NCBI GenBank assembly: GCA_025201805.1
Contig: MU619365.1
Span: 28,301 to 92,300 of the forward strand
DNA: 64,000 nt
Direction of reading: 5' to 3'
Source: Parasitella parasitica NRRL 2501
Taxonomy: Eukaryota; Fungi; Mucoromycota
A model generated the notes under the pieces. It worked only from the letters and a program-made list of their open reading frames with translations. It ran no database searches and was not told the DNA's origin. This document shows, one piece after another, positions 5,427-6,817 of this stretch (positions within the stretch are counted from its first letter, which is position 1; each line of letters starts with the position of its first letter). The translations under genes and the position numbers were made by a program.

Positions 5427-6817
5427 ATGTTCCCATCTCAAGAATCATTAAAGAAGAACTTCATTGTCCCTTCTCCTGCTGGTGATGTTGCCGCCCCTAC
5501 CGGTGCTAACCTTTACGCTCGTTTTGCCATTGCTGGTGCTGTCTGTTGCGCTGTCACCCACGGTGCTATGTAAGTCTCCTGATTTCAAGTAACATGTTTT
5601 AGATTGCAAAACTAACTTTGATTTAGGGTAAATATACTTTGCTGATATTAAGCTGGACCAAAGCGCAAGTATTAATCATTTATTATGTAATAGACTCCCG
5701 TGGATGTCGTCAAGACTAGAATCCAATTGTCTCCCGAGGTTTACAACAAGGTAAATATAAACTGCCCTTTTTTTTTTTTTTTTTTTGTAAAGAGAGGAAG
5801 GGGAGGCAATACAGTGGCCAAGTGTGTCACTCGAAAAGTGCTGCATTCTGCAATTGAATGGGAAATTACGGAAAGGATAGAAATTTTAGTTTGACTCATA
5901 ATTTTCTTCTGCAGGGTATGATTGCTGGCTTCCGTCAAGTCATTGCCGCTGAAGGTGCTGGTGCTCTTTTGACCGGTTTCGGCCCCACTGCTGCCGGTTA
6001 CTTCTTGCAAGGTGCTTTCAAGTTTGGTGGTTATGAATTCTGGAAAAAGACCTTCATTGAGATGGTTGGTGCTGAAAAGGCCTCCGAGAACCGTACTGCC
6101 ATCTATCTCGGTTCTTCTGCCATTGCCGAATTCTTTGCTGATGTTGCCCTCTGTCCTTTGGAGGCTACTCGTATTCGTCTCGTTTCTCAACCTACTTTTG
6201 CTACTGGTCTTCTCAGCGGTTTCTCCAAGATTTTGAAGGAAGAAGGTGCCATCAAGGGTTTCTACTCTGGTTTCGGTCCCATCTTGTTGAAGCAAGTTCC
6301 TTATACCATGGCCAAGTTCGTTGTCTTTGAACGTACCACGTAAGTTATAGTGTCTGTGTGCGTTTGTCTGTGTACTGATTTTCTTTTTCTTTATTGAAAT
6401 GCTAGTGAATTGATCTTGAACCAAATCGGTACTCCCAAGGACCAACTTGCTCCCTCTACCTTGACCACTGTCAATCTTGGTTCTGGTATCGTTGCCGGTA
6501 CTGTTGCCGCCATCGTCTCTCAACCTGCTGATACCTTGTTGTCCAAAATCAACAAGCAAAAGGGTGCTGCCGGTGAATCTCTCACCTCTCGTCTCGTCTC
6601 TATGGCTGGTCAACTTGGTGTCAAGGGCCTCTTCTTGGGTCTCGGTCCTCGTATTGTCATGGTTGCTACTCTTACTGCCGGTCAATTGTAAGTTTTTTTG
6701 TGTGTTGCTGTATGGGATGTATTACTAAGCTTTTTTATTTTAATTTTTTATAGCGCCATCTATGGTGATATCAAGCGTGTTTTGGGTGCTACTGGTGGTG
6801 TTGAAATCAGCAAGTAA
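5427..6817 (+). CDS. MIR1: Mitochondrial phosphate carrier (SLC25A3/Mir1). Exons 5427-5569, 5627 (1 nt), 5694-5750, 5915-6339, 6406-6687, 6754-6817
   Basis: Carrier motifs [58 protein letters not shown]; strong codon bias of a highly expressed gene. Confidence 0.95.

Follow-up and report, generated by a model that had tools for sequence, protein, structure and literature searches.

The mitochondrial phosphate carrier gene of the fungus Parasitella parasitica NRRL 2501 raises a question about how its messenger RNA is put together. Its first coding exon and the next large exon meet in different phases, and a single intron with ordinary ends between them would put the first carrier signature of the protein out of frame by one base. 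The original prediction, which was made from a stretch of 64,000 nucleotides (contig MU619365.1 of assembly GCA_025201805.1, positions 28,301 to 92,300 of the forward strand; hereafter the window), placed the missing base at position 5627, as an exon of one nucleotide between two short introns. We asked where the base in the mRNA comes from. Coordinates are those of the window, and slashes within sequences mark splice junctions.

The carrier gene and its exon structure

Exons were used singly as queries, and whole-protein steps were run with either P0185, the deposited Parasitella parasitica protein, or a natural cDNA open reading frame from a metatranscriptome (L020:29-988). The product of exon 4 (141 aa) shares 97% identity with a protein of Mucor circinelloides that is named mitochondrial phosphate carrier protein. 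The same name is borne by relatives in Mucor, Podila, Umbelopsis and Rhizopus, and named full-length proteins were recovered with the metatranscriptomic reading frame as query. P0185 itself (323 aa) is deposited under the more general name mitochondrial carrier domain-containing protein and carries the PF00153 domain three times (160.8 bits). On protein similarity, the gene at 5427-6817 is a mitochondrial phosphate carrier of the SLC25A3/Mir1 type. Every exon piece of the window is an exact substring of P0185, with Met48 spanning the AT/G junction; at the protein level, the deposited annotation of this genome is correct for the carrier.

The genome of Parasitella parasitica holds one close copy of the carrier and one paralogue of 51% identity (L002). 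The paralogue was uninformative as a comparator for the site, having its intron about five codons upstream. On the 3' side of the carrier, and convergent with it, lies a homologue of the autophagy gene ATG101 (window 7166-7532, minus strand). The same pairing is kept in three other loci of Rhizopus and Mucor-like origin (L013, L014 and L107), and this shared neighbour supports the orthology of the carrier loci.

All coordinates of the original prediction proved correct when the sequence was reread, and they are collected in Table 1. Exon 3 encodes the first carrier signature, PxDxxK, with Met48 directly before it. The 12 bases at 5622-5633 read TTTAG/G/GTAAAT, so that an AG lies directly 5' and a GT directly 3' of the G. 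Intron 1 has a branch point ACTAAC at 5611-5616, with the branch A at 5615, 11 nt from the 3' end of the intron, and intron 2 has a branch-like TATTAAT at 5670-5676, 18 nt from its 3' end. The two half-introns measure 57 and 66 nt, compared with 164, 66 and 66 nt for the other introns of the gene. The position of intron 3, after the residues YNK, is common to many fungi. This intron also contains a long run of T (5766-5787), and the stretch 5758-5798 was skipped as a repeat in read mapping.

Table 1. Exons, introns and related features of the phosphate carrier gene in the window
Feature	Position	Strand	Remarks
Exon 1	5427..5569	+	ATG start; ends GCT AT, phase 2; P0185 residues 1-47; lies under cDNA contig X1
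Intron 1 (57 nt)	5570..5626	+	Donor GTAAGT 5570-5575, acceptor TAG 5624-5626; zero cDNA depth
Probable one-nucleotide exon, G	5627	+	Third base of the Met48 codon (AT/G); invariant TAG and GTAAA on either side in 7 lineages
Intron 2 (66 nt)	5628..5693	+	Donor GTAAAT 5628-5633, acceptor TAG 5691-5693; cDNA depth zero to 5692
Exon 3 (57 nt)	5694..5750	+	Starts ACT CCC GTG GAT, phase 0; P0185 residues 49-67
Intron 3 (164 nt)	5751..5914	+	Donor GTAAAT; phase 0, after YNK
Exon 4	5915..6339	+	141 codons plus 2 nt; cDNA and P0185 match
TGA, brought into frame by a direct 5570-5693 splice that leaves out the G	5919..5921	+	Read from the sequence
Intron 4 (66 nt)	6340..6405	+	GT..AG; cDNA joint 6339>6406
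Exon 5	6406..6687	+	cDNA and P0185 match
Intron 5 (66 nt)	6688..6753	+	GT..AG; cDNA joint 6687>6754
Exon 6	6754..6817	+	Stop TAA 6815-6817; P0185 match

One G in the mature transcript

Assembled cDNA contigs of four sequencing runs (X1, X2, X4 and X5) were aligned to window positions 5300-7000. Run X1, from the same organism, accounted for 57% of the words sampled from the locus, in the form of a single contig of 1878 nt (depth 3104) that is 100% identical to the genome, has 0 mismatches around the site and crosses five spliced junctions. The RNA label of this run was itself guessed; a five-fold spliced contig from a single genomic locus can hardly be DNA. Its sequence across the site is GGTGCTAT-G-ACTCCC (GCTAT-G-ACTCCC), and the aligner placed the joint at 5569>5693, as a skip of 123 nt with the ends GT..TA and a positional ambiguity of one base. 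The same joint was found in contigs of relatives that are 90-95% identical (X4, X5 and one contig in X2). The predicted junction, in which a single G separates GCTAT from ACTCCC, is thus present in contigs of all four runs, and the exon looks constitutive. Among the assembled contigs of these runs, none covered either half-intron. The mRNA taken alone fits a G drawn from 5570, 5627 or 5693 equally well, all three positions being G.

Conservation of the internal splice sites

The genomic origin of the base was addressed with homologous loci, which were fetched by means of exon-4 peptides called on public contigs. Seven diverged loci, Mucor-like contigs among them, were compared: the window, L010, L013 (98% identical to Rhizopus delemar over exon 4), L014 (96% to Benjaminiella), L100, L102 (closest to Choanephora) and L107 (Rhizopus microsporus, GCA_011764045.1). 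All seven read AT/GTAAGT…TAG/G/GTAAA…TAG/ACN, where the internal GTAAA is followed by T, G or A, and the donor and acceptor of intron 1 are unchanged throughout. An alignment of orthologues had been proposed as a check for a conserved AG-G-GT, and the motif was found in each of these loci, Rhizopus microsporus included. The lengths of the two introns vary independently, from 52 to 73 nt for the first and from 55 to 134 nt for the second. Of the 14 half-introns, 11 carry a branch motif of the CTAAC, CTAAT or TTAAT type at a distance of 11-25 nt before the acceptor; the others (intron 1 of L014 and intron 2 of both L013 and L107) have degenerate motifs that depart from CTRAY.

In a MAFFT alignment of the seven loci, invariance inside the outer splice sites was confined to two blocks, the donor GTAAGT and the nine internal bases TAGGGTAAA, the latter occurring once in the 64-kb window. 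Similarity within the intron interiors was 0.42 and 0.34; shuffling of one partner gave 0.40 and 0.33, showing that the interiors are saturated. The chance of finding AGGGTAA in an interior of such composition was 0.0003-0.006 per locus, and it was seen in seven of seven; the product over the seven loci is 4e-19, a figure to be read with the lineages not fully independent and the interiors randomised. The comparison shows that strong purifying selection acts on the internal TAG/G/GTAAA in lineages of Mucoraceae-like fungi and of Rhizopus.

Because the internal TAG/G/GTAAA is conserved while the interiors around it are saturated, we assign the G to 5627, and we hold with high confidence that it is a real, conserved one-nucleotide exon between two ordinary U2-type introns. 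The claim that this base is needed to make the protein is borne out by the cDNA contigs, by Met48 of P0185 and by the internal motif in the seven diverged loci. No natural variant with another base at this position (Ile48 in place of Met) was present among 123 homologues.

Two further observations concern the same loci. At the internal donor, every one of the seven lineages has GTAAA-N and none has GTAAGT, while the intron 3 donor differs freely among them. An ancestral single phase-2 intron in Rhizopus, as might be read from the protein P0233 (…SR/TPVD), was ruled out, as L107 has the full TAG/G/GTAAAG layout.

Other explanations of the phase mismatch

A regulated switch was considered as a first alternative. 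Splicing directly from 5570 to 5693 would skip the G, shift the frame and expose the TGA at 5919-5921, so that nonsense-mediated decay (NMD) would tune the amount of phosphate carrier. The sequence offers the means for this: the competing GT..AG splice is chemically possible, and the stop foreseen in the original prediction was recovered in silico, with none in the 57-nt exon and then the TGA early in exon 4, upstream of two more junctions. However, the joint that such a splice would leave (5569>5694, 124 nt) was absent from the contigs of the four runs, in which rare forms get lost, and nothing ties skipping to any growth condition. Moreover, the splice sites must be kept for the protein to be made, which fully accounts for their conservation. 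We therefore regard a regulated switch as unlikely.

A single intron of 123 nt with one non-canonical end would yield an identical product, since a G is found at both outer positions in all seven lineages. It could run from 5571 to 5693 (TA..AG), with exon 1 ending in ATG, or from 5570 to 5692 (GT..TA), with the next exon starting G ACT, and the aligner does report one skip of 123 nt with the ends GT..TA and one ambiguous base. Spliceosomal introns belong to the classes GT-AG, GC-AG and AT-AC. To our knowledge, neither TA-AG nor GT-TA is a spliceosomal intron class, which counts against both versions. A shift of one end would also explain none of the internal conservation: the invariant TAG/G/GTAAA, with a branch-like motif upstream of it in most of the seven saturated loci, would be left without a reason, as would the normal and independently varying lengths of the two halves. 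We consider the single intron improbable. An artefact, in which the assembly lacks a base beside 5569 or 5694 or the G is added by RNA editing, has nothing in its favour except the phase mismatch itself and can be dismissed for practical purposes, given the same layout in at least seven independent assemblies of different species, a same-organism cDNA contig identical to the genome on both sides of the site, which excludes the assembly error named in the original prediction, and the fact that we know of no insertional editing of nuclear mRNA in fungi.

A possible course of splicing

In the reading favoured here, the G at 5627 is flanked by two complete U2-type introns, each with its own GTAAxx donor, a branch site of the CTAAC or TTAAT type and a TAG acceptor. 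Recognition is probably by intron definition, with the two introns excised in succession, much as in recursive splicing except that a single base stays in the mRNA. No more than about 10 nt separate the branch site of intron 1 (5611-5616) and the donor of intron 2 at 5628, and sequential removal is suggested because the U2 and U1 particles can hardly occupy both sites at once at this distance. The same spacing argument has been made for APC11 of Arabidopsis (PMC4674806).

Either order leaves workable sites, namely ATG/GTAAAT when intron 1 has gone first and TTTAG/GACT when intron 2 has. Neither order is favoured by the sequence, and the proposal that intron 1 leaves first was a guess. It is doubtful that the introns are removed in a fixed order and that the G-skipping splice acts as a regulated, NMD-coupled brake on the phosphate carrier and so on OXPHOS capacity. 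In a wider version of this doubtful reading, lineage-specific recognition of splice sites would let Mucorales tolerate one-nucleotide exons to an unusual degree and carry them in many housekeeping genes.

Relation to known splicing systems

Ratchet-point recursive splicing proceeds through a zero-nucleotide exon (AG/GT) of which nothing is retained, and it occurs in very long introns. The carrier resembles it in having an acceptor and a donor close together inside an apparent single intron, and in probable stepwise removal, but differs in that one base is kept and both halves are of minimal size. A zero-nucleotide recursive splice site was accordingly rejected, since one G stands between the AG and the GT and is retained.

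The original prediction also likened the layout to fungal stwintrons. In a stwintron, one intron sits within another and splits its donor, branch site or acceptor, so that the outer intron comes into being only after the inner one has been excised, and nothing of the stretch is kept (PMC5587772, PMC6616335). Like the carrier site, a stwintron has two U2 introns in a single interval between exons of a fungal gene, and they are removed in consecutive reactions (PMC5587772, PMC6616335), as is probable for the carrier; the carrier introns are un-nested, each is complete, and a coding base is left. The likeness did not hold up on inspection of the site: positions 5569-5571 do not read G/GT, each intron is already complete in the unspliced sequence, and G 5627 is retained. 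Both the [D1,2] and the acceptor-split layouts were tried and misfit, the two introns being complete and the base remaining in the mRNA.

One-nucleotide exons had been described in the original prediction as very rare, with one reported case, that of Arabidopsis; cases in Fusarium (PMC12940212) and Coprinopsis (PMC12230235) have been published too. In Arabidopsis APC11, a constitutive one-nucleotide exon was proven by mutagenesis (Guo & Liu 2015, PMC4674806). That exon is likewise flanked by AG and GT, and the model put forward to explain it combines intron definition with sequential ("recursive") removal (PMC4674806). It is an A within an interval of 422 nt, and the base was mutated (PMC4674806), whereas the carrier exon is a G for which the proof is comparative.

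A close parallel in layout comes from the CYP621A genes of Fusarium, in which a G exon in an AGGGT context has transcript support and is accompanied by widespread errors in gene models (Nelson & Syed 2026, PMC12940212). As in the carrier, AG/G/GT stands between two short introns and is kept in orthologues (PMC12940212). An intronless relative served there as a length marker, and SRA transcripts confirmed the exon (PMC12940212). The Fusarium gene is a rarely expressed P450 of one genus, with the G as the middle base of a Gly codon (PMC12940212). The carrier, in contrast, is a highly expressed housekeeping gene in which the G completes a Met codon as its third base, and its layout is shared by at least the Parasitella and Mucor-like lineages and Rhizopus.

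In Coprinopsis cinerea, a long-read annotation contains 13 one-nucleotide exons in 13 genes (PMC12230235), so that such exons recur within a single fungal genome. Coprinopsis is a basidiomycete, and the text consulted gives neither an analysis gene by gene nor an account of conservation (PMC12230235).

For Mucorales, we found no reports of one-nucleotide exons in the literature. In its DNA, the eL24 gene of the same genome (L111:1386-1506) has a carrier-like architecture and reads TCT AG/GTAATT…ACTAAC…TATAG/A/GTAAGA…ACAG/ATT; the candidate exon is the A at 1442, and the half-introns on its two sides measure 56 and 64 nt. Together with the carrier, this DNA suggests that one-nucleotide exons recur in this genome too and are not very rare in Mucorales. 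The ribosome-biogenesis factor RLP24 is present in the same genome in two close copies (L108:1100-2000, minus strand, and L109:1330-2100), which have the same two intron positions and fit a gene duplication within the lineage.

Loci that lack the intron pair

Four loci have no intron at the site and read CACGGTGCCATGACTCC without interruption. Three of them (L017, L018 and L019) have an exon-4 peptide identical to that of Lichtheimia hyalospora, and the fourth (L104) is closest to Absidia and Chlamydoabsidia, at about 92%. In these Lichtheimia-like and Absidia-like loci, GCC ATG ACT is contiguous, and the intron after YNK is kept. All four have a 2-oxoglutarate dehydrogenase gene upstream and are without ATG101 downstream. 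Because the neighbours differ, their orthology with the carrier of the window is uncertain, and they may represent a different paralogue. None of the related loci has a single intron at the site; the two introns are either both present or both absent. The pair could have been gained in the ancestor of the core Mucorales, or else lost twice (for example, by cDNA-mediated conversion), and either history fits.

Elsewhere in fungi, introns fall close to the site at other positions. In Podila verticillata (L106:2610-2740), the Asp codon is split by one phase-1 intron (G/AT), and in many other fungal contigs a single intron follows GAT GT (contigs with a nearby single intron: L033, L047, L050, L055, L060-L062, L067, L069, L073, L081, L082 and L084). 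Going by these positions in DNA, the first carrier signature is a local hotspot of intron positions that are not shared between lineages. Metagenome matches were mostly cDNA-like contigs and distant fungi, of at most 84% identity, and they include cases in which HGA(L/M)TPVD is contiguous.

Public gene models and significance

Several public Mucor and Rhizopus models of the carrier are broken at the site of the one-nucleotide exon, which serves as a warning for annotation. The Mucor circinelloides model (P0001) is without exons 1-3, and hence the N-terminus, starting at exon 4 and running into intron 5. The Mucor bainieri model (P0229) has ILTDMFNFR in place of M, a spurious insert of nine residues. 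The models of Rhizopus microsporus (P0233) and Rhizopus azygosporus (P0235) have ETNILFLSR in place of GITHGAM, through a fake exon of 27 nt. In the Rhizopus microsporus locus, the residues ETNILFLSR come from reading the last part of intron 1 and the G as coding sequence, with the splice made at the internal GTAAAG donor (L107:1641-1756). Independent gene predictors picked this internal donor in Rhizopus, and the protein sequence suggests that the Mucor bainieri model used the equivalent site as well, which speaks for the one-nucleotide exon.

The phosphate carrier is a further well-supported and deeply conserved case of a rare type of exon that has already been described. Its mRNA is abundant and essential, and it is found in Mucor and Rhizopus, which are transformable and often sequenced, making the gene a practical system for the study of splicing. 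High expression makes intermediates and lariats easy to catch, so that the order in which the two introns are removed is an approachable question. The carrier of these fungi thereby lets one ask how the spliceosome handles an exon that is too small for exon definition.
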